Source: Prasinococcaceae sp. CCMP 1430
Lineage: Eukaryota > Plantae > Prasinodermophyta
Assembly (NCBI GenBank): GCA_013416795.1
Contig: RQSC01000236.1
Location: 1-43,864, forward strand
DNA length: 43,864 bases
Direction of reading: 5' to 3'
The notes under the pieces were generated by a model. That model was not told where the DNA came from. It was given only the letters and a program-made list of their open reading frames with translations, and searched no databases. Numbering within the stretch: position 1 is the stretch's first letter; every line of letters begins with the position of its first letter. Both the position numbers and the translations under genes were made by a program. Positions 1,461 through 23,243 of this stretch are shown piece after piece.

Positions 1461-2513
1461 TCACCGCCTCCTCTTCATGCGCCCCGCCCTGTCGTCCTCT
1501 GTGAGCTCCATCGCCACCGGCATGCTGTCGAAGGACTCGTGCGCGCCACCCGCCCAGCCCTGGCGCGCACGTGCCCCGCTCCCGCCGCCGCCTCGCTCCT
1601 CGGCCTCCTTTCGCACGCTGTAGCCGAGCGCACAGCCTACAGTCAGCCACGATGACGCAACGCGTGCGCGATGTGTGCGCCGCCCCGGGCGTCCACGCAA
1701 GCGCGCAGACACGTGCGCTACGCCCGCGCGCCAGTCGCTCCGCTTCGCGCCCGCACACACCTTTCCTTCTTCGCTTCGAGCTCCTTCTCTGCGCGAGCGG
1801 CGGCGTCGCTGCTTGCCTTGACGGACGCCGCGCTCTGCTCGATGGTCTGCAGTAGCGCACCAGTGTTCGCCTCCCACCGCTCCAGCCCTGCCACGATGTC
1901 CTTGAGGCTCTCTCGCGGCACGTCGCGCCCCGCGCAGCCGCGCACGTGGAACATGCGTCGCTGCTGGTCGAGCGTGCCGCGCACCAGGCCCGTGTACATG
2001 CACTCATTGATGAGGAGGTCCTCGAGCTCGCGCGTCGAGCCGATCTCGAGGGTCGCCTGCAGCTCGTCGTACGTGAGCTCTGCGGAGCGCTCAGCGAGCG
2101 ACACCACCGTGAGCTGGCGCAGCTTACGCTCGGCGGCCGCGTCGAGCGGCGGCAGCGCGGGGGAGCCACTCGCGCGAGCAGCGCGATAGTCCGCCCATGT
2201 GCCGTACGCGAAGAGTTTCAGGAGGGACAGCGCGGGCTCGTGCTCTGTGTTGGCAAGCTATTGGAGTGCAGGGGGCGTTTGGGTGCGCGCAGCGGCTTGT
2301 CAGGACGGGCACGCACGCGTGCGTTGACGGCGCTGGTAGCGCCGAGCAGCGGCGCGCAAGGCGCGCGCGACGCACCGCTTGCATGCCAGGCACATCCAGT
2401 ATCTCGGCAAACGCAAACACCCCCGGGTGCGCGGCCGCCTCGGCGGCGAGCGGCGATGGCGTCGAGCAGCTTCGCGCCCTGCGGGAGCGCCGCCCACGCG
2501 CCGTCCACGCCAT
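1461..2513 (-). CDS. CSN7: COP9 signalosome subunit 7 (PCI domain)
   Basis: Spliced exons give AAHPGVFAFAEILDVP / LLKLFAYGTWADY / KLRQLTVVSLA / RELEDLLINECMYTGLVRGTLDQ..AGRD, all CSN7 hallmarks. Stop at 1461. True start unresolved (see findings). Confidence 0.9.
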
Positions 2514-2815
2514 CCGGCGCGCAGTTGAAGATGCGCACGCCGCTCGCGTCGCCCGCCGAGCCCGCGAGTGGCGCGGGGAGCGATCCGCTCCCGCCGCCGC
2601 CCCGCTGCGACTCCTGCACGCACGCGCCGAGGGCCTTCCAGAAGCGCCCCGCCTCGGGCACGCCCGCCAGCGCCTCGAGCGTGAACGGCACCGCGTCCAC
2701 GACGCTCATCACGCCGCCATCGCCGGCGACGCCGCCCTGCGTTGCGCACCTGCAGACGATCGCGACCGAGGCGAGCGCCTTGACCCTCGCGTGGCTCATC
2801 GCGCCCTTGAGCGCC
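2451..2815 (-). CDS. Unidentified coding segment upstream of CSN7 in a different frame
   Basis: Frame ALKGAMSHARVKALASVAIVCRC...VVDAVPFTLEALAGVPEAGRFWKALG...LLDAI has coding-like G/C-ending codons. It is cut by the single N at ~2816. Confidence 0.45.
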
Positions 2816-2816
2816 G

Positions 2817-4033
2817 NGCATGTGCGTCCGCTGCGGCGCGCGCGCGCGTGGATGACGAGGCCGTGTGGCGGGCGCTGGCGGTCGGCGTGGCGCAGGGCGC
2901 CGACGCCAACGCGTGCGGACGGTGCGTGGGTGCAGCAGCGGACGCCGCGCGCTCGCCCCGAGATTGGGGACTCGTGCGGTGGAAGACGCTCTGCCAGGTG
3001 CTGCACGCGGCCGCGCCGCTCGTCGGGAGCTGGCGCGAGGCCGGGCCAACACAGGCGGGTCCCGGAGACACCGACGCGCACGCAAGTAGCGCAGGGGACG
3101 TCGAGCGGCTGAGTCTCGACGTCGCGTGGCGGCACGGCGGGGCGCTCGTATATGAGACGCTGCGCGTCGGGCACGCTTTCCGCCGGCGCGTGCTGGGCGT
3201 CGTCGTTGCGTCGGAGGAGCTCGTCGTGGCCGATGCGCGACAGCGCACGGACGCACACTGCGGCCCCGCGCTGTCATTCTGCAGTGCCGAAAACGCCCAT
3301 GACGTATACGAGCCCGACGAGACGGGGCTGCTCTTCGACATCGAGTGCATCGAGGTACGCATTCGACCCTGCTTCATTGTGTGTGTGTGTGGGTGGGTTG
3401 GGAGATGCGCGGGGGAAGGGCGGGGGGCGGTATGCGCGTGACGCGCCGCTGACACATTGTGTCTTGTGATTGCGCACGTGCCGCATTCTGCTGCCGTGCT
3501 CGCAGGGGTGCAGAGACGACGACATGCCAGCACGGGCGTCTGCGTGCTTGTCCTGCGACGCCGGCGGCGGCGATGCGTGCAGCAGCTCGGCCTTCTTCTC
3601 CGGCTGCGGCAGCGAGGCGCTTTGCTCAGGCTCCGGGCGCTGGGCGCTGCGAGCGCGCGTATGCGCAGGCTTCGGACTCGCGCGCGTTGGGGCCAAGGCA
3701 CTCGTGGTGGTCGAGCCCGAGGTAAGGGGCATTGCCGCAGGGTTGGAGGGCTTGAGCTTGAGGCGACGGCGTTCCGGGTCGTCCGGGGACTGCATCGCGA
3801 GTGCGGCGTCGGTGTCGCCGAGCTTCGAGCGCTCGCTGAGCGCCTTCATGGGCGCTAGCTCGAGCCCCGGCTCGGGTTCGGCCCGCTCGGCGCGTCGCAG
3901 AGAGAGGAGGCGGAAGGAGGGCACCGCCGAAGAGGGCTCCGTTGCGCGTGGGTGGAAGAACGGCGTGCGCGCTGGCGACGTATTCCTGCTGCGAGCAGCG
4001 TCCTCGACGCGACCACACACACCCTATTTCTAA
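2817..4033 (+). CDS. F-box-like protein, 5' truncated
   Basis: Begins after the N with ACASAAARARVDDEAVWRALA, which resembles the end of an F-box motif. Phase-0 intron 3355-3505 with CTGAC. Ser-rich second exon ends at TAA 4033. Confidence 0.55.
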
Positions 4034-6264: not shown

Positions 6265-7671
6265 ATGGAGCGTGTCGCCCGGGGGCGCGGCGCGGTCGCC
6301 GGCGGTGAGTCCGTGGCGCGCGGGAGGCCCGAGGAGCGCCTGGTGGACGTCGGGCGCATCGTGGGCGTCCTTGGAGGGGGCGTGTGCTACGAGGAGCGAT
6401 ACGTGCCGCTCCCCGGTGGAGATGACGACGAGTGGCTCGCGCTGCGCGTATTCGCGTGCGCGCACGGCGCGGACGGTCGTGCGGCTCCTGCTCCGCGGTC
6501 TGCAGGCGGCGAAGGGGAGCGAGCGGACGGCGGGGAAGGTGGCCCTGGCAGCGGCAACGACACCAAACTGGAAGGCACTCTGCCCGTGCTCGTGTATGTG
6601 CACCCGTGGGCGGTCATGGGGGGCCGCCAAGACATGCTCCTGCGACGCTCGGCGCTCATATCTCGCCAACACGGCATGCACGTGGTCACATTGGACCTTC
6701 GAGGGGCGGGAAATTCCGACGGGAGGTGAGGCGGCCGCAGACGAGCGTCGTGCGACGCGTGCGTGCATGGCCCGCTGCGACTTACAATGCGCGACCGATG
6801 TGCTGAAACTGCCTCGCTTTCGCTCGGCACCTCGCCGCCTGCAGCTCGACGCTGCGCGGTGGCCCAGAGGTTGATGACATTCTCGCCGCACTGAGCTACG
6901 CATCAGCGCGCTTCGCGGGCAGCGAGCTCCTCCTCGCCGGCGAGTCCGCAGGTGGGCCATTCGCCGGATCGGCGCTCGCCAGGGACCCGCGCGTGGCTGG
7001 ATTCGTTGCAATCGGATATACCTGGGGGTTCTGGACGTCAGTGCTCTTCGGCCGCCACTTCAAGGCGCTCATGCGAGCGCGAGCGCCGCGCCTGTTCGTG
7101 ATGGGCTCAGACGACTGCTTCACGTCCATCCGCACGCTGCGCAAGCGGGTTGCGAGGTGCATCAAGGAGTCCGGAAATGAGTACGCCGACTTCGAGGTCG
7201 TGCAAAGCGTCGGTCACTTCGCCCTCGAGGGCCCGGACTACGATGCGCACGTGGCCGAGCGCATAGGCGCCTTCGTGCACCGCGTGCTGCGGGGCGACTT
7301 CAGGCGGTCAGTGGCGGCGACAGCAGGTGATGCACGGTCGAAAGTCGAGGGTGAGGCGACGCCAGTGGCGTTTGGCTGCGAAGGCGGCGCTGCCGCGCAG
7401 GCGACGCAGGCCTCGCCTGTTGCTGCAGCGAGTCTGCCGCCGGACGCCCGGGTGTGAGTGTGTGCCTTTCCTGACGCGCTCGCGCGCGTTCGCGCGCGCG
7501 CGGGGGCCAGCAGCCAGCGGGACTGCCTTGGGCCTCTTCCGCCGCGCCGCAGCAGCTGCGTGCGCCGTCGCACTCGCCGCTGGCGTCGCGCATGCGATCA
7601 CGCGCCCGAGGCGTGCGCGCGGCGTCGGCCACCGCTCTGCAGCGGCCGCCCGCGGCGGACAACAGACGTAA
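6265..7671 (+). CDS. Alpha/beta hydrolase with a probable C-terminal hydrophobic tail
   Basis: VYVHPWAVMGG, DLRGAGNS, nucleophile elbow GESAG, Asp in MGSDDCFT, His in VGHF. The unspliced frame stops at 7457; an intron at 7454-7517 extends it to 7671. Confidence 0.8.
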
Positions 7672-8737
7672 CGGTTCGGCGCCTTTCCCTCCGTTGCCAT
7701 CTCAGCAGACTTGCGGGCTGGTCTCCTTCTTGCGCGCTGCATGTATTTCGGCATTGGGATTGGTGCGACAGCGGTGCGCGCGCCCCCGGCCCGCGCCCCG
7801 GCGAGCCCCGCGACAGATGGGATCCCCCGGGTGCGCAGCGCAGCGCGCCACGCCGCGTGCCCCACCCTCCATCACTCAGCAAGGCTTGGTTACTGGAGGC
7901 ACGTCGGAGCCCCCTCGCGCGCCCGCTAACCAACCGCGGCGGCCACATGCCTGAGCGCAGCAGCCCCCGACCCACCGACCGACCGAGGCCTGGGTTGGTT
8001 GATTGGTTTGGCTGGTTCCCCACACGCTCCCATCCGACGAGCTACACCGACCGAGACCAACCAACACCTGGCTTGGAGCTTCCCTCCTCGTCGTGAGTCG
8101 GTACAGTAGTGCGGGCGCGTCTAGCTCGTGGAGAACCAAGCTGGGGTTCCTGACGACCTGCCGGCCGCCGGCTTCTCATCGTCTCTTGGGGCGCCGCCGG
8201 TGCGCGCGCGAGATCCCGCCGCGCCGCCGCGGGGCCGCGGCGGCCGACCACAGCGCGAACGGGGGCGCGCGGGCGCGAGCGCGCAGGGGGGGGCGCGAGG
8301 CGCGAGGCCTTCGGTTGAGCTCGGACCGACGAAGGGGAGTCGGAGGGGGGGGGGCGGGTTTGGGGGATAACGCGGTGGTGAGCACGCTACGGCAGCGCTG
8401 CTGGAAGACGAGGGTAGTAGCCTGGTGAGCCCGCGTGACCAGGGGGGGGGGAGGGGGCGCCCAGCGCAGCACTGAGCGGTGGCAGCATTGCGTGAGGGGA
8501 GGCAACGTGCGTGGCACAAGTGGTGCGGGTGCCCTCGCGGAAAGCGCGACTCCTGCTCCCGCCCGCCGCCCCCGCCCCTCCCCCCTCTCCCCATCCCTCA
8601 CCTTTACACCCCGCAATTGAGAGCCAGGACCCTTCGCCTGCTTGCTGGTGAGGGTGGCAAGAAGCTGACGCCTGTGCTGTCTCGTGCTCCCGTCCACGCG
8701 CGCGCGCGCGCGCACGCGCGCTGCCAGCGTACGAATC

Positions 8738-9419
8738 ATGCGCGAGGCGGCGTTGCAGTCAGCCGAAGCGCCAGGCTGCGCGACTGGAGGAGGAATGCAC
8801 CGCTCGTGGCGCCCCGCGCCTGTCGAGGTGTCGCTCGAGGACTGTCTCGCAGGCAAGGGGATGAAGCACAGCGACTCGCAGGCGACATTTATTTGTCTGG
8901 ATGACGATTGTGATGGTGAGGACGGCGGTGGCTCCCAGAGCAGCAGCGTGACCACACCCAGGGGCGACGTCAACACGATCACCAATAGCGAGTGCGCCGA
9001 TTCTCCGCTCTCACGGTGCCACTTGCGCGGTCTGGACGAGGCGCAGCTGCCACCTCTGAACCACAAGCTCGCCATGGGCGTCATGGACAATCAGGTGGTG
9101 CACAAGGTACGCAGACAAGGCGCACTTTCGCTTGCTCACACGACCCCCCGCACCTTTCCCGAACACGTGCTCAACCACATGACGGACGCACCCGAGCGCT
9201 CGTGCTGTGGCCAATTTTGCTGACGTGTCGCCGCGTCCTCCTTCACAGCGGGTGTCGGACTTGGATGCGCTCATCGACGAGGACAGCGCCGTCGGGTGCT
9301 ACAACGAGCCGCTGGCCTTCGGTGGCACGCTCAGGATTGTTGCATACTTCGCGCGCGCTGTAGCCTGGCTCGCGGGCGACGGCACACGGCGACGGCGATA
9401 CGACCGGGAGTCCCAATAA
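8738..9419 (+). CDS. Hypothetical protein (~180 aa), two exons
   Basis: ATG 8738 ORF to CACAAG|GTACGC, a phase-0 intron with CTGAC ending CTTCACAG|, then a second exon RVSDLDALIDED...YDRESQ*. No recognised domain. Confidence 0.55.
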
Positions 9420-9711
9420 GCATATGGGTCAGGGTCCGTGCATACGGTAGCGACACGCGGACGTCAGGGGGCGCACGGGCAGGCTCGTGAGGGCGCACAT
9501 GTAGGGTAATCAGAAGAATAGTTACGGAAGACACTCACAGGCAACCTGCGGTGCTCGAGACGGGGCCCGTCGCGCCAGCTGGGGGTCGCCGTACGAGCTG
9601 CGGGCCACTGCGAACGCGCGATTATGACCGCGCCCTGCGGCACGTGCTCTGAGCACTCGTGCACAGCGCGGCGCGACCGCATGCGACGAAACGTGAGATT
9701 GCCGGCCTCCC

Positions 9712-10486
9712 TTAGATTTCCATGACATTCTTCTCGATGCTTTCGATGACACTGGGCACCACGCTGGCGTCCTTGGCAGGGTCCGGCAAGCCCCAGTCCA
9801 CCGAGCGCAAGCCGGGCGCCCACGGGCACTGGCCATCCATGCAGCCCATGGTCACCAGGAGGTCCCACTGATCGTATCCTCCGATCGCGGGGTCGTCGTG
9901 CGCCTTGGAGCGGAGCCCGTCCAGCGAGTAGCCGCGCTCCGACAGGGCGGCAGACATGACCGGGTTGATTTTCCCGCTCGGGTACGTGCCGCACGAGGCG
10001 ACGACGAGGTCGCTGCGCTTCGTGCGGCAGATGGCCTCGGCGGCGATCTGCGGGCGCCGACAAGCGCAGCGTCAGCCGTCCGCGCCCTCGCGTTTCACAA
10101 TCGTCGCGCCCGACGACGCGCGCGTGCGCAGGCGGGCGCGTCGCCATCGCACGCGCGCGCGCGCACGCACCGACCGCCCTGCGTTGTGCCCGCACACGAA
10201 GAGCACGCGCTTCACCGAGTTGACCACAACCCTTTCCTCCGTGTCCTCCAAGCCCTCGTCGCTAGCGGCCGCCTCGCGGCTGTCGGCCCCCGATTGCGCT
10301 CCATCAGCGCCGCCGCCAGTGCTGGCACCCGTGAGTAGACGTTCGGCGTAGTCCGCCGCGTCCTCGCACAGGGCGCGGCGCGTTGGCGCCCCGTTCTCCG
10401 AGAAAAGGTACTCGGCGGCGTCCTGAATGCCGCCCTCGAGGGCGGAAGCGTCGATGCCCCCGATGCCGCCCCTGTTGCTGTCATTG
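9712..10486 (-). CDS. arsC: LMW-PTP-fold (thioredoxin-coupled-type) arsenate reductase domain with N-terminal extension, 5' truncated
   Basis: KRVLFVCGHNAGRS|IAAEA (CX5R P-loop), SCGTYPSGKINP, LLVTMGCMDGQCP (resolving Cys pair) and DWGLPDP. One phase-0 intron. Cut by N at 10487. Confidence 0.85.
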
Positions 10487-10487
10487 N

Positions 10488-12551
10488 CGGACGCGGACGT
10501 CGAGCGCGCCGCGGGCGGGCGCGCGCGCGGCGAGCCCGAGTACGCCGACGCGGGCTTCCTCGACATCTTCAAGAACTTTGCGCTGCTCGGCTGGACGGCG
10601 TTCGGCGGGCCCGCCGCGCACATCGGCCTCTTCCAGAAGGTGGGTGCGAGCGCGCGCGTGCGCGCGTGCGTGCGCGCGTGCGTGCGTGTGCCGTGTGTGT
10701 GTGTGCGCGCCCGCGCGCTTGCCCGAGCGTGCGCGTGAGCCCGCGCTGATGCGCCTCGGTCCGCGGCTCTCGTGGTGCACCACGCAGCTCTTCATCGAGG
10801 ACCTCAAGTGGGCGAGCTCGGAGGCCTTCGCGGAGCTGCTGGCGCTCTGTCAGTGCCTTCCTGGGCCCTCGAGCACGCAGATGAGCTTCGCCATCGGCAC
10901 CACCAAGCGCGGCGTGCTTGGCGGCCTGCTGAGCGGCATCCTCTTCCAGTACCCGGGCCTCGTCCTGATGACCGTGCTGGGCGCCTTTGCCGACGACTGG
11001 GCGGGCACCGATGTGATCGACAAACACGCGTCGCTGGGCGGCTTCGTCAGCGGCATCAGCGCAGCGGGCGTGGCGCTCGTGGCCTCCGCTGCCTGGGGTC
11101 TCGGCAACAAGCTGTGCAAGGACCACGACACCAAGCTCATTTCCGTGCTCAGCGCCGTGGTGGCGCTCTACTACGGTGCGACCCCCCCACGAACCCCCAC
11201 AAACCACCCCGCGCGCGCTTCCGCTGCTGTGCTTGGCGACGCGCCGCTCTGCGCGCGCATAGCGCTGACCGAGCTCGCGTTCTGGCCACCCGCAGTGACT
11301 GGCTGGATCTTTCCACTGCTGCTGCTGCTCGGCGGCATCGTCACGTACTTCTACCGAGGCCCGCTGCCGCCCGCCGACGGCGAGGTCTCCGCCAAGAAGG
11401 CCGCCGCCGCCTCAGGCGTGCAAGACTTTGGCGTGGGCAGGCCAGTTGGCGCCATGCTCGTCGCCGCCTGGTTGGCCATCCTGGGGGTGGGCATCGCGCT
11501 GGTGGCCTCGACCGACTACGACGACTGGAAGGAGCTGCACTGGTTTGAGGTGCGCGTTGGCGCGTGCGCGCGCCAGAGAGAGGGGGGGTGCGTGCTGCCA
11601 GGCACGTACGCGCACCTTGGGACACAGCGGACTGACTCAAGCTCAACCCGCCGCCCCGTTCCCCACGCGCGCTTCAGGCATTTTATCGCACTGGCGCCAT
11701 CATCTGGGGCGGCGGGCAGGTGGTGCTGCCGCTCCTGCAGCACGAGGTTGTCAAGTACGCCACGTGCTGCACAGACGACGCTGGCGAGGAGGGAGCGCGC
11801 TGCTTGGCATACTTCTCGGCGGGGCAGTGCACGGAGGCCTTCACAGGCGGCGGCGCGTGCGGCTCGGTCGAGGCCACGCGCTGCACGTACGTGCGCGAGG
11901 ACACGTGGGTGACGGAGGAGCAGTTCTTCGCGGGGCTAGGGCTGGCGCAAGCGATGCCCGGGCCGTTGTTCAACCTCGCAGGTACGCGACGCGGGCGCTC
12001 CAATACGGCGCCCACGCCACGCCTGCGTCTGCCGCGGCGCTTCGCATGCGTTGCCTGCGCGCGCGCCCGCGTGCGTGCTGGCGCCACGGGCCCCAGCGCG
12101 CCCCTTGCGCCGGTATGAGCGCGTCGCGCTGACCGGATGGCGCGCCGCCGCCGTCGGCGCGGCCTGAACAGCATTCCTCGGCGCGGCAGTGGGCGGCGTG
12201 CCTGGCGCGGGCATCTGCTGGCTGGGCCTGTTCGGCCCTGGCGTGATGCTCATCTTCGGCGTGCTTCCGTTCTGGGGCCAGTTCCGCACCAACGCGCTCT
12301 ACCGGCGCATGCTGCCGGGTCTAAACTCGGCGGCGGTGGGGCTCGTCTTCGCGGCGGTGCTCTCCATGGCGGCCAACGCGCGAGCGGCGTCCAGCGCTCC
12401 GACGTACAGCACTTGCGTGGCTGTGCTCGCCTTCTACGCGGCGCAATTCGTCAAGCTGCCCGCCGGCATGTGGTCCAAGGTGAAGGCGCCGATGGTCATA
12501 GTCGCCGGGGGGGCGCTGGGCGCCCTCGGGGGTGCGGTGGGCGCGTACTAG
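10488..12551 (+). CDS. chrA: CHR-family (chromate/oxyanion) transporter, long bidomain form, 5' truncated
   Basis: Two CHR half-motifs, AFGGPAAHIG...LALCQCLPGPSSTQ and IWGGGQVVLPLL...GLAQAMPGPLFNL, plus many TM segments. Multi-exon; stop TAG 12551. Confidence 0.92.
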
Positions 12552-12771
12552 GACAGTGCGCGCGCGACGCGTGCGCGCGCATCGGCGGTAACGTTCCAAG
12601 CGAGCGCACGGGGCACGGAACGCGCGCCTGTTTCCCGCGCGCACTGCTCTTGCGCCGAGTGCGCGCGGCACCCAACACACAGCATTACTCCGAGTGCGCC
12701 TCCAGACACGCTCGCCCTATCGTACATGGCCGCGCACGCGCGCGCGGGCAGACGCCCACGGACGGGGGCGC

Positions 12772-13407
12772 TCACTCGGCCTCCGCGCGGCACGACGCGC
12801 CGTCGGCGTTTTCGCGCTCCGCCGCCGCGCGCGCGGCCAGGACACCGGCGAGGTCGCCACGGCCGGTCACATTGGTGCGACGCTCGGCCCAGAAGTCGTA
12901 CACCTTCTCAGCGAGCGCCCCGACAGTCTCGTTCTTGGTGACGGCGTACACCCACCCGAGTCCGACGGCCTCGTACAGCTCCCGGAAGACCGCGACGCCA
13001 GACAGGATGGAGCCGTCCGCCCTAATGGCGTGGATGGACGCCATCGCGCGCGGAAACGTGATGCCCATGTTCCACTCGGGGCCGAAGTCCGGCCCTAGGC
13101 GAGCGCGCACGGGAGCCGCGCGCACGGGAGCAGCGCGCGGGTCGCGCGGCGTCAGCGGCGTCCGCGCTCGCACCTCGTCCCGCGCTGGCCGCGCGCTGCG
13201 CGCGCTGCGCGTGCTGCACGCGCGCGCCCGCGGGCGCGCGCTCGCCGCACCGTCGATGTCGACGAAGTCGATCGCCCCCTTTCCCTCGTCGCGCGAGCGC
13301 AGGAAGTTCACCTCGCGCTCGCAAAGCGGGCATCCGCCGTCGTAGAGCATGCGGATGCGCGCGCCGGCGGGCCACCGCAGCGCCTCCACCGTGCCCGCCG
13401 CGGGCGC
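12772..13407 (-). CDS. DCC1-like thiol-disulfide oxidoreductase (DUF393)
   Basis: MLYDGGCPLCEREV (DxxCxxC), ASIHAIRADG, GVAVFRELYEAVGLGWVY, YDFWAERR. One phase-1 intron. The start lies in or beyond the N gap. Confidence 0.85.
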   Translation of the reverse strand, partial: APAAGTVEALRWPAGARIRMLYDGGCPLCEREVNFLRSRDEGKGAIDFVDIDGAASARPRARACSTRSARSARPARDEVRARTPLTPRDPRAAPVRAAPVRARLGPDFGPEWNMGITFPRAMASIHAIRADGSILSGVAVFRELYEAVGLGWVYAVTKNETVGALAEKVYDFWAERRTNVTGRGDLAGVLAARAAAERENADGASCRAEAE

Positions 13408-13571
13408 NNNNNNNNNNNNNNNNNNNNNNNNNNNNNNNNNNNNNNNNNNNNNNNNNNNNNNNNNNNNNNNNNNNNNNNNNNNNNNNNNNNNNNNNNNNNN
13501 NNNNNNNNNNNNNNNNNNNNNNNNNNNNNNNNNNNNNNNNNNNNNNNNNNNNNNNNNNNNNNNNNNNNNNN
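13408..13571. other. Assembly gap (N-run)
   Basis: 164 N. Confidence 0.99.
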
Positions 13572-13701
13572 GGGCGCGGGGGGCGCGCGCGCCGAAGCGC
13601 GCTCGCGCGGAGGGGTACACAGGTTACAAGACACTGGCGGCGGGCGGGCGCGGCGCTCGGCAGGCCCGGCAGCGCGGTCGCGCGCGCGCGGAGCGCCGCC
13701 C

Positions 13702-15060
13702 TCAGCCGACGACGGCCGAGAGCCAGTTCGTCACCAGAGGCACGCAGTCGGCGGCGACCTCGTCCGAGTCGCGCGAATTGGAGTAGACGTCGAAGTCGAG
13801 CAGCGGCACGTCGAGCGCCTCGGCGAGCGGGAGCAGCGGGCTCAGAACGTCCACCATGGCGTCGTTGGTGCGAGCCGACAGGAACGAGATGTGGCAGGGG
13901 GAGCCTTCGCCGCGGTACGCCACGAAGGCGGTGCGATCCACGGGCGGGGCGCACGCCTGCTCGGCCCCCCCGGAGACGGCCACCGCAGCGACCGCGGCCC
14001 CCGACTTGGCGCCGCCGCCGGGCGCGGGAGCACACTCGCCACCCCCGGCGGTCGTCGCCGCCGCCGCCGCACCGGAAGCGGCGGCGGCGGCGGCGCTCTC
14101 GGTGAGCTCACGCAGCGAGTCGCCATCGAATGCCGCCACCGGCACCGGCAGGGCATTCACCGCCTCGACGATTCCCGGCGAGGGCCCGAAGCGCCCGCTC
14201 TCGCGCGCGTCGAGGCTGATGACGCCGTCTCCTTCGGACGCGATGACCAGGAGCGGATCGGCTGCGACTTCGGCGGGCACGTCGCGCAGGCCCGCGATGG
14301 CCACGCGCGCGAGGCGGCCGCGCGTCTGCACCGCGGTGCCGGCGCCCGCGGACTGGCCGACCAGCGCCAGGCGCCCGGAGTCGCGCGTGATGCCGAAGGG
14401 CCCTTCCACCAGCTGCGCCAGCGTGGCGTTCACCACCTCCTCGCGCGAGGCGGAGGGATTCTGAGGGGGCGGCGCGCCCGGGCGCGCGTACGGCGGCGTC
14501 GTTGTGGGGTCGGCCAGGCCCTCTGCGAACTCGGGGGCGCACACGACGAAGCCCGCCGCCGCGAGCGCCTCGGCGTAGTCCACCAGGTCGAAGCGCGAGC
14601 CCAGGTAGCCGTGGCAGAGGATGACCGCGCCTTTGACGTCGGCCCCTGCGGGGCGCCGTCCGCCGGCGACGACGCCCGCGGCGGCGCGCAGGGGCACGTC
14701 GCGGTCGAGCCAGCGCGGCGTCGACGGGGGAAGGCTGAGCAGCACGCGCGCGATCTTGGCGACGGAGATGGCGTGCGGGTAGAGCACCGGGCTGGCGCCG
14801 GCGGCCGCGCTCTCGCCGGCCGCGGGGTACCACATCGCCACGGGCACTTGCTGCCCCCCGCGCACCTCCACGCTCACGCGCGCGTCCTCGAACGCGACGG
14901 GCGCCGCGGCCGGCCGCGGCGACCAAAGCCGCCGCCTGGCATCGCACCGGCCCCTCCCGCCACAACCCGCCCAGCCCACCCCCACGCCCCCTCGCGCGCT
15001 GCCGGCACACGCCGAGCGTGGGCGGATAACGCCGCCTCGCGACGATACCAATGCCTTCAT
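13702..15060 (-). CDS. Alpha/beta hydrolase (PAF-acetylhydrolase/dienelactone-hydrolase-like)
   Basis: VAMWYPA, ILCHGYLGSRFD...LAAAGFVVCAPEF, nucleophile GQSAG, Asp in ASEGDGVI, His in SPCHISF. 452-aa ORF with an Arg/Ala-rich N-terminus. Confidence 0.75.
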   Translation of the reverse strand: MKALVSSRGGVIRPRSACAGSARGGVGVGWAGCGGRGRCDARRRLWSPRPAAAPVAFEDARVSVEVRGGQQVPVAMWYPAAGESAAAGASPVLYPHAISVAKIARVLLSLPPSTPRWLDRDVPLRAAAGVVAGGRRPAGADVKGAVILCHGYLGSRFDLVDYAEALAAAGFVVCAPEFAEGLADPTTTPPYARPGAPPPQNPSASREEVVNATLAQLVEGPFGITRDSGRLALVGQSAGAGTAVQTRGRLARVAIAGLRDVPAEVAADPLLVIASEGDGVISLDARESGRFGPSPGIVEAVNALPVPVAAFDGDSLRELTESAAAAAASGAAAAATTAGGGECAPAPGGGAKSGAAVAAVAVSGGAEQACAPPVDRTAFVAYRGEGSPCHISFLSARTNDAMVDVLSPLLPLAEALDVPLLDFDVYSNSRDSDEVAADCVPLVTNWLSAVVG

Positions 15061-15631
15061 TCATTTTTTTTATTTTAGTGCGACTTTTTAAATAAAAATG
15101 CTGCGAAATAAATTTAAAAAGAAAAAAGAAAAAAATGAAATCCCTTTGGTTTCCGGCGGCCGTGGCCGAATCGCGGTTGCGCGGGTCGCGCGTGACCCGC
15201 AGCCGAATAGATCATTTTACATCCAAAACGAGAGTTCTTTGAATATGTCTCCCGTGGGTATTAATGATCTGTTCTGATCTGGGCAACGGCGGCGGCATTG
15301 GCGCGTCGTAGAATCCGGTGCGCATGCGCGCGCAAGCGCAAGCGCGGTCACCCCGCGCGCGCGCGCCCTCGCGCCGTCGCGGCCACCCCCGGAATGACCC
15401 CCCGCTTAATCCCGGTCTTTTCTCCAATCACCCCTATAAATTGCGGATCATCCGGGGCTCTCTCTGGCTCGTTCACCTGGTCACCGAATCGGCTCTCTCT
15501 CTCGCGCGCGGCGCCGCGTCGCGCGCGCGCGGCGCCCCCTCGCGATTTTCGGATCGTATTGGGGTTCGGGGCCGCGGATCCGCGCGCGCGATCTTTTTTT
15601 TTTTGTTGGAGGCGTGCCTTCGTAAACCGCA

Positions 15632-18600
15632 ATGCGCGCGGCGCGCGCGCGCGCGCGCGCGCGACGCTGCGGGTGAGGGGGGTGAAGGGGGCGAGGGAGG
15701 CCAGAGCGCGCGCGCGCAGCGGTGCCGCAGCGCAAGGCGGCGGAGCCTGCGGCGGTGGACGTGCCGGCGCCGCGGGGGGGCGAGGGGGGGCTCGGTTCCG
15801 CGCTCTCGCGCGTCGACCCGGTCACGGGCTTCGTCAACGTCGACGGCGGGCGCATCGACGACGGGCGGTACGGGCGCTTCAGGGACTCCATCGCGGGCGT
15901 CATCCCGCAGCACAGGCAGATAGACGACCCCATCCGCACCTTCGCGTATGGCACGGACGCGTCCTTCTACAGACTCACGCCCAAGCTGGTGCGTCGCCGC
16001 CGCCTCCGCCCCGGACGCCGCCCCGGACGCCGCCGCGGAGCGCGCTGACGTCCCCCCGCCGCCGCCCGGCCGCGCGCGCGACGCGCGACAGGTCGTGAAG
16101 GTGCACGACGAGGAGGAGGTCGCCAAGGTGCTGCCGAAGGCCGTGGAGCACGAGGTGCCGGTGACCTTCCGAGCGGCGGGCACGTCGCTCTCCGGCCAGG
16201 CGGTGACCGACTCGGTGCTGCTCAAGCTCTCGCACACGGGCACCAACTTCCGCGACTTCAAGATCGAGGACGGCGGCAAGGTGATCACCGTGGAGCCCGG
16301 CCTCATCGCCGGCGAGGTGAACCGCCTGCTCGAGGCGTACCAGAAGAAGCACAACCTGCCGATCAAGTACAAGATCGGCCCCGACCCGTCGTCCATCGAC
16401 AGCTGCATGATGGGCGGCGTCGTGGCGAACAACTCGTCGGGCATGTGCTGCGGCGTCAAGCAGAACACCTACCACACGCTGAGGGACATGCGCATCGTCT
16501 TCGCCGACGGCACCGTGCTGGACACCGCCGACGCGCAGAGCCGCGCGGCCTTCATGGAGAGCCACGCGCACCTCGTGAGGGGCGTGCAGGAGCTCGCGCA
16601 CAAGGTGCGCGCCGACGAGGAGCTCACCGCGCTCATCAAGAAGAAGTTCGCCATCAAGTGCACCACGGGCTACTCGATCAACGCGCTGGTGGACCACGAT
16701 CCCGAGGACCCCATCGAGATCATCAAGCGCCTCATGATCGGCTCGGAGGGCACGCTCGGCTTCGTCAGCCGCATGACGTACAACACCGTGCCCGACTACC
16801 ACCACAAGGCGAGCGCGTTCGTGCTCTTCCCGGACATCCGCTCGGCGTGCACGGCTGCGGCCGTGCTGCGCCGCGAGACCGAGGTGGACGCCGTGGAGAT
16901 GTTCGACTGGGCCTCGCTCGTGCAGTCCAAGCGCATCGGCAAGTTCGTGGAGGCCGTGCCCAGGATGGCGGAGATGCCCGAGGGCTCGTCCGCGCTGCTC
17001 ATTGAGTGCCGCGGGCAGGATCGCGCGGCGATGGAGGAGTCCATCGCGAGCGTCACCGCCGCCATCAACGGCTCGGAGCTGCCCTACGAGGAGTACAGCT
17101 TCACCGAGGACCCGGCCGTCTACAACGTGTACTGGGACGCGCGCAAGGGCCTCATCCCCATGGTCGGCGGCGAGCGCGAGGCGGGCACGAGCTTCCTCAT
17201 CGAGGACGTGGCGTGCGAGGTGGACCGCCTGGGCGACATGACGTGCGACCTCATCGACATGTTCAAGCGCCACGGCTACCACGACGCGTCGCTCTTCGGC
17301 CACGCGCTCGAGGGCAATCTCCACCTGGTGTTCGCGCAGGGCTTCCGCAATGAGGCGGAGGTGCAGCGGTTCAGCGACATGATGACGGAGATGTGCGAGA
17401 TCGTCGCCGAGAAGCACCACGGCTCGCTCAAGGCCGAGCACGGCACGGGGCGCAACGTGGCGCCCTTCGTGGAGATGGAGTGGGGGCGCAAGGCCACCGA
17501 CATAATGTGGGAGCTCAAGGAGCTCTTCGACCCCGACTACGTGCTCAACCCGGGCGTCATCCTCAACAACGACCCCGACATCCACAGGAAGAGCCTCAAG
17601 CTTTCGCCGCCCAGCTCGGCCATCGTGGACCGCTGCATCGAGTGCGGCTTCTGCGAGAAGAACTGCCCGTCGCGCGACGTCACGCTCACGCCGCGCCAGC
17701 GCATTACGGTCTTCCGTGAGATCAACAGGCTGCGCGCGCTGGAGAGCCCGACTGATGAGGAGGTCGCCAAGCTCGACGACTTCGAGCGCATGTACGTGTA
17801 CAACGCGGAGCAGACGTGCGCGGCCGACGGCATGTGCCAGGAGGCCTGCCCTGTGAAAATTAACACCGGCGAGCTGATGAAGTCGCTGCGCAAGGAGAAG
17901 TTCGACCAGCCGAGCTTCGGCCAGGCCGCCGCGGCCTTCGTCGCGAACCACTTCGAGGGGGTGGTCAACAACTCGGTGCCGGCGTTGCTCAACACGGTGG
18001 CCGCCGCGCACCGCGTACTTGGCACGGGCGCGATGGGCACCATGGGCGGCGCGGTGCACTCGGTGGGGAACGCCTGGATACCGCTTTGGAACCAGTACAT
18101 GCCCACCGGCGCGGCCGCCCTCGAGGAGGCACCGAGGGCCGCCGGCGACGGCGCAGCACGCAAGAAGGTGGTGTACCTGCCCACGTGCGTGACGCGCACG
18201 ATGGGCCCCGCGGTCGGCGACGAGGCCGCGGGCGGCGACGCGGTGCACAAGCGCATGAACTCGCTGCTGCGCAAGGCCGGCTACGAAGTGGTGTACCCCG
18301 AGGGGCTGGGCTCGCTCTGCTGCGGCATGCTCTTCAACTCGCGCGGCTACAACGAGGCCGCCGGCGAGAAGAGCTCGCAGCTAGAGAGGGCAATCGCGGC
18401 GGCGTCGGAGGGCGGCAAGATTCCGGTGCTCGTGGACACCTCGCCGTGCGTGATCACCATGAAGGACTCCATCGAAGACCCGCTGCTCAAGACGGCCATC
18501 TTCGAGCCGCTCGAATTCATCGACAAGTTCCTCGTGAGGGAGCTCGACTTCGAGAAGACGAAGAAGTCCGTGGCCGTGCACGTGCCATGCTCGGCCAAGA

Positions 18601-18908
18601 AAATGGGCAAGAACGCCACCTTCGTGAAGTTGGCGGGCATGTGCGCGGAGGAGGTGCACGAGTCGGGCGTGCCCTGCTGCGGCATGGCCGGCGACCGCGG
18701 CATGCGCTTCCCCGAGCTCACGGCGGGCTCGCTCAACCACCTCACGGACGCCGCCAAGGGCTGCACCGACGGCTACTCGACCAGCCGCACCTGCGAGATG
18801 TCGCTGTCCAATCACTCGGGCATGCACTGGCGCTCGCTCGTGTACCTCGTGGACGAGAGCACGTCGGCCAAGACCGCCGCGGCGACGGCCTCTCGAGCGA
18901 CGGCATGA
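15632..18908 (+). CDS. GYD1-like: FAD/4Fe-4S D-2-hydroxy-acid dehydrogenase (glycolate/D-lactate dehydrogenase, fused GlcD-GlcF / Fe-S D-iLDH type)
   Basis: YGTDASFYRL, RAAGTSLSGQA, SLKAEHGTGRN, CIECGFCEKNCP, CAADGMCQEACP and two CCG motifs. Intron 15989-16091. The first exon has a frame problem (see findings). Confidence 0.92.
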
Positions 18909-19199
18909 GCTCGCCCGGCGGTCCGTGTGTGTACTGTACTAATGTTATGAATGTTTTGTATCCGCTCGGTGCACTCGTGCGCGCGACCCAGGGCGAGCGC
19001 TCGAGGCCGCGCGACAGGCGCCACTCCCGGCCGCCTCTCGCGGCGGCGGGGAGACGTGCAACTCATTGTGAAAATTGTACAGAGGGGACGCGAGCGGCCC
19101 GCCCGTGCGTTACGTAGCTGGCGGTCGACCACATCCGCCCAGGCGAGGGGCGAGCGCGCCCTCAGGAGCAGCGCAGGCCTCCGCAGAGCACGGGCGGAG

Positions 19200-20501
19200 T
19201 CAGGGAATGTACTCGGGCTTCGCCGGCACGAATGCGTTGGAGGTGTCGAGCGGCACGTCGTCGGCCAGGTGCATGCACCCGTCAATGCGCTTGTACTCCT
19301 CGCACACGCGCTCGTAGCCGTAGCGCGCCAGGGCGGCCTTGCGCTCCGCGGCGTCGTCGCTGTCGACGCCCTTGTACGCAATGGACGACTCGCTGAAGTC
19401 GAGCTCCTCGGTGAGGCTGAGGCCGACGCCGCTGTACGCCACCGTGCGTGCCTCGCCGAGGGCTTTCTCTGTGACCTTGGGGGGCGGCATGATGTCAGCA
19501 GTGGCCATTGCCAGCCCGTAGAAGTGCGTGGGCGCCACGCCCTTCTTGGCCGACAGCTTCCGGAACATCTCCACGGCGTCCGGGTCCCACTTGTCGGGGC
19601 CGAGCTCGCCCGTCTCAAGGTTGGGGCGGTCGCGGCCGCCAGCGGGCGCCACCCAGATCAGGTGGCCGCCCTCCTTGAGCAGCCTCTCCATCTCCTTGAT
19701 GGTGGCGATGTTCTTGCGCATCTTGGCCGAGCGCAACTCGGGCTGGTCGTTCATGTGCTTCTTGGAGTACACGCACAGGAGGTTGCGGCCCATCGAGAAG
19801 GGCTTCGCCAGCGTGTCCTCCACCACGCGGTCGCCCGCCACGTAGATGACGCGCTCGCCGAGCCCAGGGTGTGACGCCTCGGTCATGAGCGGTATGAACG
19901 CCGCGTCCGCCTCCGACTGGTGGTTGGCCATCATGACCACGTTTTCGCCACGCTTGAGCGCCGCGTCGACGGCGTCCCACCGCTCGGGCCACCGCACCAG
20001 CGACCTGCTGAAGTTGAGCAGGTTGCCCACGTACAGCATGCCCAACTCGTAGTAGTTGAAGGGCGCGCGGATGGCGCGGTGGTACGAGGGAAACTCGAAC
20101 TTCTCCTCCATCTGCAGCGCGTAGGCGGTCATCATCTTCTGGAAGGTGGCCACGGTGATGCCCGCCGCCAGCGCGCGATCGCCGTTCTTGGCGGTCTTGA
20201 CGGCGGCGATGTACGAGTCGAGCAGACCCAAGAACGTCGCGCTCACGCTCTTGGAGAGGAACCTCGCGATGATCCGGATGACGCCCTCGGAGACGGCGAA
20301 GCGCACCGCCAGCTGCGCGGCCCGCGCCTTGAGCAGCGAGAGCGCCGCCTGCACGCGCTCGCCGAGCGACGGGCTCGCGACCTCGGCCTTCTTGGCCTTG
20401 GTCGCGACGGCCATGCACACCGGCGCCGCGCGGCGGGGGCGCGAGCGCCCACCGGCCGGCGCCGCCACCGCGCCCGCTGCGGCGAGCAGAGCGATGTGCA
20501 T
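19200..20501 (-). CDS. ATS1: Plastid glycerol-3-phosphate 1-O-acyltransferase
   Basis: NHQSEAD (HX4D), YVAGDRV, PFSMGRNLLCVYSKKHM, IWVAPAGGRDRP. Transit-peptide-like N-terminus; intronless ORF. Confidence 0.95.
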   Translation of the reverse strand: MHIALLAAAGAVAAPAGGRSRPRRAAPVCMAVATKAKKAEVASPSLGERVQAALSLLKARAAQLAVRFAVSEGVIRIIARFLSKSVSATFLGLLDSYIAAVKTAKNGDRALAAGITVATFQKMMTAYALQMEEKFEFPSYHRAIRAPFNYYELGMLYVGNLLNFSRSLVRWPERWDAVDAALKRGENVVMMANHQSEADAAFIPLMTEASHPGLGERVIYVAGDRVVEDTLAKPFSMGRNLLCVYSKKHMNDQPELRSAKMRKNIATIKEMERLLKEGGHLIWVAPAGGRDRPNLETGELGPDKWDPDAVEMFRKLSAKKGVAPTHFYGLAMATADIMPPPKVTEKALGEARTVAYSGVGLSLTEELDFSESSIAYKGVDSDDAAERKAALARYGYERVCEEYKRIDGCMHLADDVPLDTSNAFVPAKPEYIP

Positions 20502-21636
20502 GCCCCCCGCCGTCGCCGCAGCACCTGAGCGCGCGCGCGCGCGCGCAGCCGCCGAACGTGTGGCTCGCGGGCGGCCTGCGCACCCCCGGTGCGCGCCGCC
20601 GAAAGACCCCAGGTGAGCCGACACAATCCCGAGGTCCCCCCGGACATCAACCCGGTACATCCCATCGGCAGACCCGGTCGAGACCCGCCGGGGCGCGCGC
20701 GGGCGCCGTTCCGGATCGCGCGCGTTGGGGCGGAGTGTAAATCATAAATCATAAATAAATAAATAAAAAATAAATAAATAAATAAAAAATACTGTACATA
20801 CCTACAGACGTGCGGACGGAATATGCGCGCATCCAAAACGGAAAAAAAAGTTTTTGGGGGAGCTGGGAGCGAGCATCGCATCGCACCTGCGCGCGTCATC
20901 ACTACAGAAAAACCAAAAAAAAAACAATGAAAAGACGTCAGACACGCCAGGGACGACGCAGGAAAACGGACGGCGGCAATAAAAACAAAATAAAAATAAA
21001 AATAAAATCAAATCAAATAGATAGGAATTCGGCCTGGTTGCTCGTTGGTTGGCTTCGGCTGGCGCCCGTTGAGGTGCGTTCGTGTTGATGTGGATCGCGT
21101 TCGTTTTGACGTGGGGCCACCGCGCCGACCAACGTTGCGACCAGCACGCGGCGGGCACGTGCCGCGTCGATCGGCGGATGGCGCGCGGGCGATCCGTGAC
21201 CGCGGGGCGCCGCGCGGACAAATCTTTTTCTCTGACCCCGGTGAGCGACCCGCGGATGGGCCCCACCCACGGATTCGGCGACCGGCCTGCCCTGCCCGCA
21301 GCGCAGTGACGAGCCCTCAAACTTTTTTTTTTTTTTGGCACGGTTCGCGAAAGGCGTCCGACCATCATCAATCGAAGCGCTCGTCATTTTGTTTTTGTGA
21401 CCGTCCCCGCCGGGGCGTCATCGTTTTTATTTTATTTTGATTTTTGGATTTTATTTGGATTTTCCGTCGAGAACGCGCGGCGCCGTCCTTGACACTCGAG
21501 ATTTTTGTTTCGTGATGAGGACCGCGCATTAGGAGTGACCTCGGCAGGTCATTCGTAGTACTGTAGCGTTGGGTCTCATCAAATTCAATTGCAAAAAAGT
21601 GCGTTTTGCCGTTTGGGCGTCAGAGTGACCATGGAT

Positions 21637-21750
21637 GATTTAGATTTCGATGGAGATGTACAGGAGAAGTACGTAGATGTACGTACGTACATTCGATGGA
21701 GATTCAGATGTATGTAGATGTTTAGATTTACATTTTTAGATTTAGAGTAT
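21637..21750. repeat. Degenerate GATKTA-type hexamer array
   Basis: gattta gatttc gatgga gatgta ... gatgga gattca gatgta ... upstream of the FMN dehydrogenase gene. Confidence 0.55.
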
Positions 21751-21896
21751 TTTCGTCCGATTTTCACGCGGGGGCCGCGCGCGCGCGTTTTCCATGCGGG
21801 TCCACACGTGCTGCAGCGGAAAGTAGTGCCAGGCCGGGGCCTGCGGGCCTCGCCGCCAGAGGGAGCGCGCGCGCGCGGCGCGCTCGCGGGCCAGCC

Positions 21897-23243
21897 ATGG
21901 CCTTCGTGCACCGCCTGGGCATCAACAAGCTGCTGGCGCCGCTCAGGCCGCTGGTGAACCCCATCGTGAACGCGGCGCCCAACGCGCGGCTCGCCAAGGC
22001 GGTGAACGTATGGGACCTGCGCGAGTGCGCGTCCAAGCGCACCCACCAGATGTGCTTCGGCTACCTCGACAGCGGCGCCGATGACGAGATCGCCATCCGC
22101 CGCTCGCGCAGCGCGTACTCCGACTACGAGATGCACTACAACGTGCTGGCCGGCAACTCGCCCGAGACGCTGGACCTGCGCACACAGATCTTCGGGAGGG
22201 AAGTCAACCTGCCCTTCTTCATGTGCCCCACGGCGGGCCACCGCATGTTCCACACGCTGGGCGAGCGCGCGGGAGCCTCGGTCGCGGCCGAGAAGGGCAT
22301 CCTCTTCGGGCTGTCGTCGCTCGCCACGACGTCGGTGACGGACATCGGCAAGGAGCACCCGCCGACGCGGCCCAAGGTCTTCCAGCTGTACCTGTGGAAG
22401 GACAAGGAGCTCAACCGCGACCTGCTGCAGGCGGCGCGCGAGCACGGCTACGACGCGGTGGCGCTCACCGCCGACTTCACGTGGTTCGGCAACCGCGAGC
22501 GCGACCACCGCAACGGCTTCAGCGTGCCGCCCAACTACTCGGCGCGCCAGATCTGGGAGGCCATCAAGCGCCCCGCGTGGACGTGGGACGTGCTCTCCAC
22601 TCCGGTGTACACCTACGCAAACATCAACAAGAACGTGCCCGCCGAGTCGATGGCGGCCTTCATCAACGCGCAGCTGAGCCCCGACTTCAATTGGAAGGAC
22701 GCCGAGTGGCTCGCGCAGGAGTGGGGAGGCAAGCTGGCGCTCAAGGGCGTGGTGCGCGCCGACGACGCGGTGAAGGCGCTCGACAACGGCTTCAGCTCGC
22801 TGTGGGTGTCCAACCACGGCGGGCGCCAGCTTGAGACGGCGCCGCCGACCGTCGACCTGCTTCCGGAGATCCGAGCTGCGGTGGGGACGGACGTGGAGAT
22901 CATCGTGGACGGCGGCGTGATGCGCGGCACCGACATCGCCAAGGCGCTGGCGCTCGGGGCGGACGCGGTGGGCGTGGGCAAGGCGTTCCTGTACGGTCTG
23001 GCGGCGGGCGGCCGCCCGGGCGTGCTGCGCGCAATCAACATGCTCGAGGACGAGCTGCAGCGGGCCATGGGCTTGCTGGGCACGAGGACAGTCGCCGAGC
23101 TGAAGGAGCGCGGGCCGGAGCTCATCCGCCGCCGCGCGAACATGCCGCAGCTGCCGTACATTCCGCCGCGCAGCATGGCACCGACGCACGCGCAGCTCAT
23201 GAACAGCGCCAAGGGCGGCGCCAGGAAGCGCAGGACGGCCTGA
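21897..23243 (+). CDS. lldD-like: FMN-dependent alpha-hydroxy-acid dehydrogenase, LldD-type
   Basis: YLDSGADDE, PTAG, FQLY, GNRERD, KGV, SNHGGRQL, DGGVMRGTDIAKALALGA. Intronless 448-aa ORF with no PTS1. Confidence 0.95.
   Translation: MAFVHRLGINKLLAPLRPLVNPIVNAAPNARLAKAVNVWDLRECASKRTHQMCFGYLDSGADDEIAIRRSRSAYSDYEMHYNVLAGNSPETLDLRTQIFGREVNLPFFMCPTAGHRMFHTLGERAGASVAAEKGILFGLSSLATTSVTDIGKEHPPTRPKVFQLYLWKDKELNRDLLQAAREHGYDAVALTADFTWFGNRERDHRNGFSVPPNYSARQIWEAIKRPAWTWDVLSTPVYTYANINKNVPAESMAAFINAQLSPDFNWKDAEWLAQEWGGKLALKGVVRADDAVKALDNGFSSLWVSNHGGRQLETAPPTVDLLPEIRAAVGTDVEIIVDGGVMRGTDIAKALALGADAVGVGKAFLYGLAAGGRPGVLRAINMLEDELQRAMGLLGTRTVAELKERGPELIRRRANMPQLPYIPPRSMAPTHAQLMNSAKGGARKRRTA

Follow-up and report, generated by a model that had tools for sequence, protein, structure and literature searches.

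Neighbouring genes for Fe-S and FMN 2-hydroxy-acid dehydrogenases in Prasinoderma and Chloropicophyceae: a candidate conserved pair for mitochondrial glycolate and lactate oxidation

Why do two non-homologous enzymes that act on the same kind of substrate lie close together in the nuclear genome of a green alga? The question is raised by a contig of 43,864 nucleotides (RQSC01000236.1, assembly GCA_013416795.1; hereafter the window, meaning this whole stretch). It carries, both on the plus strand, a gene for a 1026-residue flavin adenine dinucleotide (FAD), Fe-S and CCG-motif dehydrogenase (15394-18908; the Fe-S enzyme) and a gene for a flavin mononucleotide (FMN) dependent 2-hydroxy-acid dehydrogenase (21897-23243; the FMN enzyme). 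The window is nuclear DNA of Prasinoderma coloniale, phylum Prasinodermophyta, because the three joined exons of the Fe-S gene translate exactly to PRCOL_00006771 of that species, a EukProt entry with which the window's Fe-S protein shares a 90% cluster. In textbook accounts, each group has a single glycolate-oxidising enzyme: chlorophytes an Fe-S glycolate dehydrogenase (GlcDH), diatoms an FMN dehydrogenase and plants glycolate oxidase (GOX). In two early-branching green lineages, the genes for both non-plant types turn out to be neighbours, and their adjacency is conserved although the gene order around them is not. With a probability of roughly 0.45, we read this as a functional pair of respiratory-chain-linked mitochondrial dehydrogenases, whose proximity would have been kept for coordinated expression.

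A first-pass annotation made from the letters alone had called a ~1000-residue FAD/4Fe-4S/CCG dehydrogenase and an LldD-type FMN enzyme, co-oriented and about 3 kb apart. Pfam, NCBIfam and motif matches bear out both enzymes, and the coding regions are 2988 bp apart, with a single gene in the gap, for a glycerol-3-phosphate acyltransferase (GPAT). The same annotation had named conserved linkage in other algae among the points to check, and the pair was indeed found adjacent or linked in two Prasinoderma and two Chloropicophyceae genomes, in three different arrangements, which favours a real cluster. On chromosome CP060754 of Chloropicon primus, the Fe-S gene (1132 amino acids, minus strand) and the FMN gene (plus strand) are direct divergent neighbours 803 bp apart. 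A Chloropicon-like metagenome contig (L002) holds them in tandem, the FMN gene first, with the same flanking EXS, AlaAT and PUA genes as in C. primus. Two further contigs (L009 and L010) belong to a relative of Prasinoderma, with identities of 84-85% and 92% between its proteins and those of the window; here, the Fe-S gene precedes the FMN gene in tandem at a distance of 741 bp. This is the order of the window, which adds GPAT between the two. Since GPAT is absent from that position in the relative, it is no member of the conserved pair. The genes downstream of the pair in the relative also differ from those of the window. Beside the identical gene pair, L009 and L010 themselves diverge directly after the FMN gene, where one continues with a 246-residue open reading frame (ORF) on the minus strand and the other with a plus-strand DNA_pol_delta_4 gene; such a difference next to the pair points to a rearrangement between strains or to a chimeric assembly.

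When the Chloropicon loci were compared with the whole window by tblastx, only the two dehydrogenase genes were common to both, and no flanking gene shared between the Prasinoderma and Chloropicon lineages was found. The pair could in principle have been brought together by chance in each lineage independently, an explanation for which nothing speaks beyond the orientation that differs in each genome. We consider it extremely improbable, as the likelihood of such an independent juxtaposition in two genomes is about 1e-7, assuming ~7-9 thousand genes per genome, and the pair is present in four. Full-text literature searches that paired the enzyme names with Prasinoderma, Chloropicon or prasinophyte returned no paper on this linkage.

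What the Fe-S enzyme might do is suggested by its relatives. It is 61-64% identical to green-algal proteins, including 61% over 94% of the ORF to CHLRE_06g288700 (Cre06.g288700), which is GYD1, the photorespiratory glycolate dehydrogenase of Chlamydomonas that converts glycolate to glyoxylate (PMC12174325). The suggestion that chlorophytes use the Fe-S type as a glycolate dehydrogenase is thereby upheld. Both proteins fall within one eukaryotic clade with 100% support in a tree rooted with bacteria and they share the domain order FAD_binding_4, FAD-oxidase_C, 4Fe-4S and two CCG motifs, and on these grounds the window gene is the GYD1 orthologue. Pfam models matched its main ORF with E-values of 1e-26 (FAD_binding_4), 1e-46 (FAD-oxidase_C) and 1e-9 (Fer4_8). 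The C-terminal half is GlpC/GlcF-like, the GlpC and GlcF models matching residues 560-970, with a CxxCxxCxxxC motif at residue 603 and CCG motifs at residues 831 and 950; despite the latter two, the Pfam CCG model did not reach the E 0.001 threshold on this protein. Unlike GYD1, its Prasinoderma counterpart falls outside the Chlorophyta clade, together with prymnesiophyte sequences. We know of no report of the Chlamydomonas GYD1 gene adjoining an FMN 2-hydroxy-acid dehydrogenase.

The FMN enzyme is encoded in a single uninterrupted frame of 448 amino acids, identical to the stored 448-residue protein, and its residues 45-404 match positions 1-345 of the 350 of the FMN_dh model (PF01070) with an E-value of 2e-120. 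It is collinear with bacterial LldD models over 7-372 of 381 model positions, and its scores lie below the NCBIfam LldD cut-offs (232 bits against 550 for NF033901 and 259.5 bits against 376 for PRK11197), so that the protein is LldD-like and no LldD equivalog. Alignment to human HAO1 places the catalytic residues at Y56, Y165, R200, K283, H307 and R310, which align with Y26, Y132, R167, K236, H260 and R263 of HAO1, and in our alignment A1 they are invariant with the exception of the nearly invariant Y56. In contrast to the plant and animal enzymes GOX and HAO1, which carry a tryptophan at the position that governs substrate size (W108 in spinach, W110 in human), the window protein has Leu142, a residue invariant in the green clade described below. 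The active site is intact, with a small pocket residue as in L-lactate enzymes. A further ~13 residues relative to HAO1 are found in the loop 220-247, which presumably resembles the membrane segment of LldD and mandelate dehydrogenase.

The closest relatives of the FMN enzyme are found in C. primus (77% identity), in the alga contained in an assembly of the acoel Convolutriloba (77%) and in Pycnococcus/Pseudoscourfieldia (72%), followed by Prasinococcus, haptophytes and Parmales at 62-65% and by diatoms, mostly at 58-63%. Among the best 120 FMN_dh matches, none is named as a core chlorophyte or a member of Mamiellophyceae, except for a strain labelled 'Picochlorum RCC944', whose enzyme groups with Chloropicon and whose label we presume may be outdated. 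Identity to a 431-residue 'glycolate oxidase' of Phaeodactylum tricornutum (P0072) is 63%. That protein has no peroxisomal targeting signal (PTS1) and is for this reason equated with the mitochondrial isoform of Kroth et al. (PMC2173943); we infer that it is also the enzyme characterised by Schmitz et al. 2017 (Photosynth Res 132:183), a diatom mitochondrial FMN enzyme oxidising glycolate as cited in PMC6594073 and PMC9670274. To the extent of those citing accounts, the earlier proposal of an LldD-derived mitochondrial glycolate enzyme in diatoms holds. The window and diatom proteins have in common the catalytic residues, the leucine at the Trp108/110 position and an N-terminal extension of ~30 residues (MAFxHxLGxNKxL…), which recurs in the eukaryotic members from green algae to diatoms, while bacterial matches to the FMN enzyme start only at query residues 30-32. 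Conservation of this kind (window 21897-21990; P0072 residues 1-40) is unusual for a cleavable presequence, and these residues may serve in targeting or in anchoring to a membrane. The two proteins differ in clade, that of the window protein being a green-algal sister clade with 100% support, and in that no Fe-S dehydrogenase is linked to the diatom FMN gene at the Phaeodactylum locus.

Was the pair inherited vertically, or was it passed between algae? In the GlcDH tree, rooted with Azospirillaceae sequences, the eukaryotic proteins are monophyletic, and Chloropicon lies within a Chlorophyta clade (98% support) with Prasinoderma outside it, which is the pattern of the species tree. One recent transfer of the two-gene block between marine picoalgae, from the Prasinoderma lineage to the Chloropicophyceae or the reverse, would agree with the tight clade that the Prasinoderma FMN enzyme forms with chlorophyte sequences (77-80% identity), far from Prasinococcus. 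The tree of the Fe-S enzyme speaks against such a transfer, since a constraint grouping Prasinoderma with Chloropicon is 29 log-likelihood units worse than this topology. The approximately unbiased (AU) test, with 21 rows under LG+G4, gives p 0.088, so the grouping is disfavoured but formally unrejected. Moreover, the Fe-S enzyme of the window is closer to Mamiellophyceae (63-64%) than to C. primus (57%), and a scan of viral contigs found no relative. The family has evidently moved between eukaryotes, as the Prasinoderma GlcDH groups with prymnesiophytes, yet we regard a recent block transfer as improbable. Path lengths of the two genes, computed under the same model, stand in a GlcDH to FMN_dh ratio of 3.4 within Prasinoderma, 2.6 within the Chloropicon lineage and 3.5-3.8 between the two, and this proportionate divergence fits co-inheritance of the pair, unlike a recent transfer of the FMN gene alone.

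Several taxon labels in these trees, for the clusters called Chrysochromulina, Diacronema and Pyramimonas, are based on cluster members. With 97% support, the Prasinoderma Fe-S dehydrogenase joins a clade in which a protein of Chrysochromulina parva occurs, and the Chlorophyta clade contains a cluster with a protein of Diacronema lutheri; haptophytes thus carry green-type GlcDH genes, possibly from two sources. The contigs behind the sister sequences of the Prasinoderma GlcDH (L031 and L032) proved prymnesiophyte-like, with no FMN_dh gene nearby.

A bacterial origin of the arrangement had also been suggested, as a relic of operon co-transfer, and here the comparison with known systems is instructive. 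As the first-pass annotation had stated correctly, the lldPDE operon of Pseudomonas aeruginosa pairs lldD with the Fe-S gene lldE (PMC6134097), that is, an LldD-type FMN enzyme beside a multidomain Fe-S D-lactate dehydrogenase family, exactly the two families considered here. If both genes had entered an early green alga together from an operon of this type and stayed adjacent since, the order of FMN_dh before GlcDH on L002 would preserve that of lldD before lldE. Also in favour of such an origin, each eukaryotic clade is monophyletic against its rooting bacterial sequences, and the closest bacterial matches of both genes include Alphaproteobacteria. The operon, however, is a bacterial polycistron with a permease and the LldR repressor, whereas the window genes are monocistronic and come with neither: GPAT lies between them on the opposite strand and the Fe-S gene has introns, so they are separate transcription units, and no permease or regulator was found among the neighbouring window ORFs that were scanned. 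GPAT is the only intervening gene, as had been noted, and lies on the minus strand.

The bacterial relatives themselves speak against a relic. The nearest FMN_dh homologues found come from marine alpha- and gammaproteobacteria (45-50% identity) and the nearest Fe-S homologues found, 'FAD-binding and (Fe-S)-binding' proteins, lie on plasmids of Azospirillum and Skermanella (45-47%). The closest families differ, with Azospirillaceae for the Fe-S gene and Kordiimonadaceae, Hyphomonas, Parvularculaceae and Lysobacterales for the FMN gene. No Fe-S dehydrogenase was present at any of the seven closest bacterial FMN_dh loci (up to 8 kb on each side) and no lldD at the four closest plasmid Fe-S loci inspected, where the gene stands with lldP or alone; the closest homologue of each gene therefore lacks the other nearby, which gives the co-transfer idea no support. 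The Azospirillum and Skermanella loci contain lldP and an FCD-type regulator. In Azospirillum, which has the closest bacterial Fe-S homologue found (46.6% over 98% of the query), the locus combines lldP, the Fe-S D-lactate dehydrogenase and lutABC, and the L-lactate partner is LutABC and not an FMN enzyme as in the window. The bacterial Fe-S homologues lie in lactate-utilisation loci (one is annotated as a lactate dehydrogenase), and from the literature we infer that they are D-lactate dehydrogenases. The taxonomic ranges of the two genes among eukaryotes differ as well. Bacterial sampling was thin, with seven FMN loci from a pattern scan and plasmids as the only source for the Fe-S gene, and an operon relic is therefore kept at low, non-zero odds. 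Two matches of 381 and 863 residues (P0112 and P0224) were considered as bacterial and rejected, because their contigs look eukaryotic, one belonging to a Fistulifera-like diatom and the other to a Mamiellophyceae-like alga with an intron-split gene; neither shows the linkage.

Origin and maintenance are separate questions, and the readings weighed here overlap in part. If the two genes form a functional pair, the conserved neighbourhood would encode two non-homologous, NAD-independent 2-hydroxy-acid dehydrogenases, both passing electrons from glycolate and D-/L-lactate to the mitochondrial respiratory chain and not to O2. The Fe-S enzyme would take glycolate and D-lactate, the FMN enzyme L-lactate and perhaps glycolate. 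Their adjacency would be older than the split of the Prasinoderma and Chloropicon lineages and would have been retained because proximity helps co-regulation, and in C. primus the two genes would share the 803-bp divergent promoter region. An aminotransferase of AlaAT/GGAT type (GGAT, glutamate:glyoxylate aminotransferase), which would catalyse the next step of the pathway, adjoins the pair in the Chloropicon lineage.

This last point rests on an AlaAT-family gene that is convergent with the Fe-S gene at both Chloropicon-lineage loci, 151-288 bp away (L001:4235-5647, plus strand; L002:10463-11761, minus strand), and that matches PDB 3tcm with an E-value of 3e-184. The AlaAT family supplies the GGAT of plants. 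Glyoxylate amination by GGAT is the step that follows glycolate oxidation (scheme in PMC12174325), and the gene beside the pair may accordingly mark an extended glycolate-to-glycine neighbourhood. In Phaeodactylum, an AlaAT gene 49% identical to that of C. primus (L013:4760-6187, plus strand) is the second gene upstream of that for the FMN enzyme; the intervening gene encodes a DAO-family flavoprotein. The tblastx comparison of the Chloropicon loci revealed no AlaAT-family gene in the P. coloniale window.

How firmly does the evidence argue for proximity with a function? The opposing view is that an ancestral adjacency was kept by luck in two compact genomes, and several observations weigh against a functional pair, some of them in favour of such luck. 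On the contigs seen, the FMN gene has no adjoining Fe-S dehydrogenase in Pycnococcus (L003) or in the Tetraselmis-like symbiont alga of Convolutriloba (L011), so the linkage is dispensable, and in P. coloniale an unrelated gene, GPAT, has been inserted between the two. The same lack of an Fe-S neighbour applies to the contigs seen for Diacronema, Pavlovales, Triparma and Phaeodactylum, and a Mamiellophyceae-like contig (L017) has the Fe-S gene without an FMN neighbour. A search for shared promoter motifs (k-mers of 7-10 nt in six upstream regions from four genomes) found none, the only k-mers in common being CGCGCGC and poly-A at about the level of shuffled sequence. Of thousands of ancestral adjacencies genome-wide, a handful may survive in two lineages by luck. 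The 5' end of the Fe-S gene, and hence any targeting signal, is only provisional, as set out below. Finally, the FMN tree conflicts with the species tree. Prasinoderma, Chloropicon, Pycnococcus and the symbiont alga form a green clade with 100% support, unresolved within, while Prasinococcus capsulatus falls with ochrophytes and haptophytes in a separate clade of Prasinococcus, Parmales, haptophytes and diatoms. A clade of Prasinoderma and Prasinococcus is rejected (AU p 4e-68, for a group chosen after the tree had been seen), and purely vertical descent of the FMN gene is thus not established. The family may have a past either of old paralogues or of transfers from eukaryote to eukaryote, and the placement of Prasinococcus could reflect old paralogy, a transfer between eukaryotes or contamination of a transcriptome.

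Against mere luck stands the nature of the surviving pair, since two enzymes for the same kind of substrate are unlikely as a random adjacency. The three orientations imply repeated local rearrangement without separation, and all flanks have been scrambled while a pathway-adjacent aminotransferase stands next to the pair in the Chloropicon lineage. We therefore regard luck as unlikely, and prefer the functional pair retained for coordinated expression. A more ambitious version of this reading, doubtful although possible, is that of an ancient green-algal nuclear cluster for mitochondrial oxidation of glycolate and D-/L-lactate that would be older than the split of Prasinodermophyta and Chlorophyta, would combine chlorophyte- and diatom-type enzymes in one cell and would include the aminotransferase in the Chloropicophyceae. 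A well documented metabolic gene neighbourhood conserved across distant green algae is the nitrate-assimilation cluster, which differs from the pair in its pathway and in having more genes.

The pair bears on the evolution of photorespiration, on the origin of the FMN enzyme of diatoms and haptophytes, given that relatives exist in a green clade, and on the question of whether regulation keeps metabolic genes adjacent in compact algal genomes. The pair may represent a small and ancient gene cluster for dealing with the waste of photosynthesis. Should the ancient cluster be real, no conserved photorespiratory gene cluster would have been described in a eukaryote before it, and the 'green' and 'diatom' glycolate routes would have coexisted ancestrally.

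The structure of the Fe-S gene deserves closer description, as its start had been placed at 15632. The ATG at that position opens a frame of 14 Arg/Ala-rich codons that ends in TGA (15632-15676), in the frame of the next exon but inside annotated intron 1; the short frame could be an upstream ORF or a sign of a wrong 5' gene model, and a search by hand found no canonical in-frame splice from this ATG. In the annotated model, which joins three plus-strand exons into the exact 1026-residue sequence of PRCOL_00006771 (P0270), exon 1 (15394-15414) encodes MTPRLIP and is followed by intron 1 (15415-15745; 331 nt, GT...AG). Exon 2 (15746-15988) begins the conserved FAD-binding region (…IDDPIRTFAYGTDASFYRLTPKL), and its frame-2 translation aligns with the N-terminal region of C. 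primus. Intron 2 (15989-16091; 103 nt, GTGCGT…ACAG) precedes exon 3 (16092-18908), which holds FAD_binding_4, FAD-oxidase_C, the 4Fe-4S dicluster and both CCG motifs. The six-frame ORF 15948-18908 is only this last exon with read-through from the intron.

Intron 2 is required because homology demands a change of frame. A conserved N-terminal motif, FAYGTDASFYRLTPKL in the window and FAYGTDASFYRLNPKY in C. primus, lies in another frame than the main ORF; joined by homology, FAYGTDASFYRLTPKL runs directly into VVKVHDEEEV, for which C. primus has FAYGTDASFYRLNPKYVLKVANEDEV, and tblastx and tblastn alignments to relatives begin exactly at 16092. The seven codons of exon 1 lack independent backing from homology, and the 5' end of the gene and any presequence are therefore provisional. 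Database searches for the Fe-S gene used the single-exon references 15948-18908 (the ORF on which the Pfam matches above were scored) and 16092-18908, and exons were joined only for the trees and for tblastn, the full join being P0270. Both genes had been described as nearly or fully intron-free; the FMN gene has no intron and the Fe-S gene two short 5' ones.

Between the pair, the GPAT gene (19200-20660, minus strand) is of chloroplast type, with a Pfam Acyltransferase match and a match to PDB 8ia1 at E 3e-80. It is separated from the LldD-like, diatom mitochondrial-type FMN gene by a divergent intergenic region (20661-21896) with AT-rich islands at 20706-21061 and 21316-21781. The flanking islands had been singled out as unusually long. 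Those beside the two dehydrogenase genes (264, 356+466 and 545 nt) are indeed among the longest, but islands of this kind occur at most intergenic regions of the window, whose G+C content is 68%, and they are not unique to the pair. The outer neighbours are unrelated, comprising a chromate transporter, an RCC1-repeat protein, a Trp/Tyr-tRNA synthetase and, divergent from the Fe-S gene, an ORF for a possible alpha/beta hydrolase. The latter, an ATG-initiated ORF of 452 residues (13702-15060, minus strand), has no Pfam match, and its language-model features resemble those of alpha/beta hydrolases of the PAF-acetylhydrolase/chlorophyllase type (score 0.93), which we offer as a lead only.

Some further observations concern the FMN enzyme in other organisms. 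A metagenome scan with the FMN_dh alignment yielded five uninformative loci, in which the gene lay at a contig end or the contig looked like an artefact. One metagenome contig of 3970 nt (L026) carries two copies of the FMN gene (59-1339 and 2101-3381), equally similar to the query and 2042 nt apart, either a tandem duplication or an assembly artefact. In the non-photosynthetic diatom Nitzschia sp. Nitz4 (scaffold8), the enzyme is tandemly duplicated at 176411-177769 and 178071-179598 (P0070 and P0105). The DAO-family (PF01266) flavoprotein adjoins the FMN enzyme both in P. tricornutum and on a Fistulifera-like contig (L013:7420-8964, L014:983-2152 and L015:11692-12618); its N-terminus is weakly ThiO/glycine-oxidase-like, and the gene looks like a diatom-specific conserved neighbour. 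In Triparma columacea (L012), the FMN enzyme lies between a gene of the KDPG/KHG-aldolase family and an aldehyde dehydrogenase (6797-9746 and 12152-13760), KHG aldolase being an enzyme that yields glyoxylate and pyruvate.

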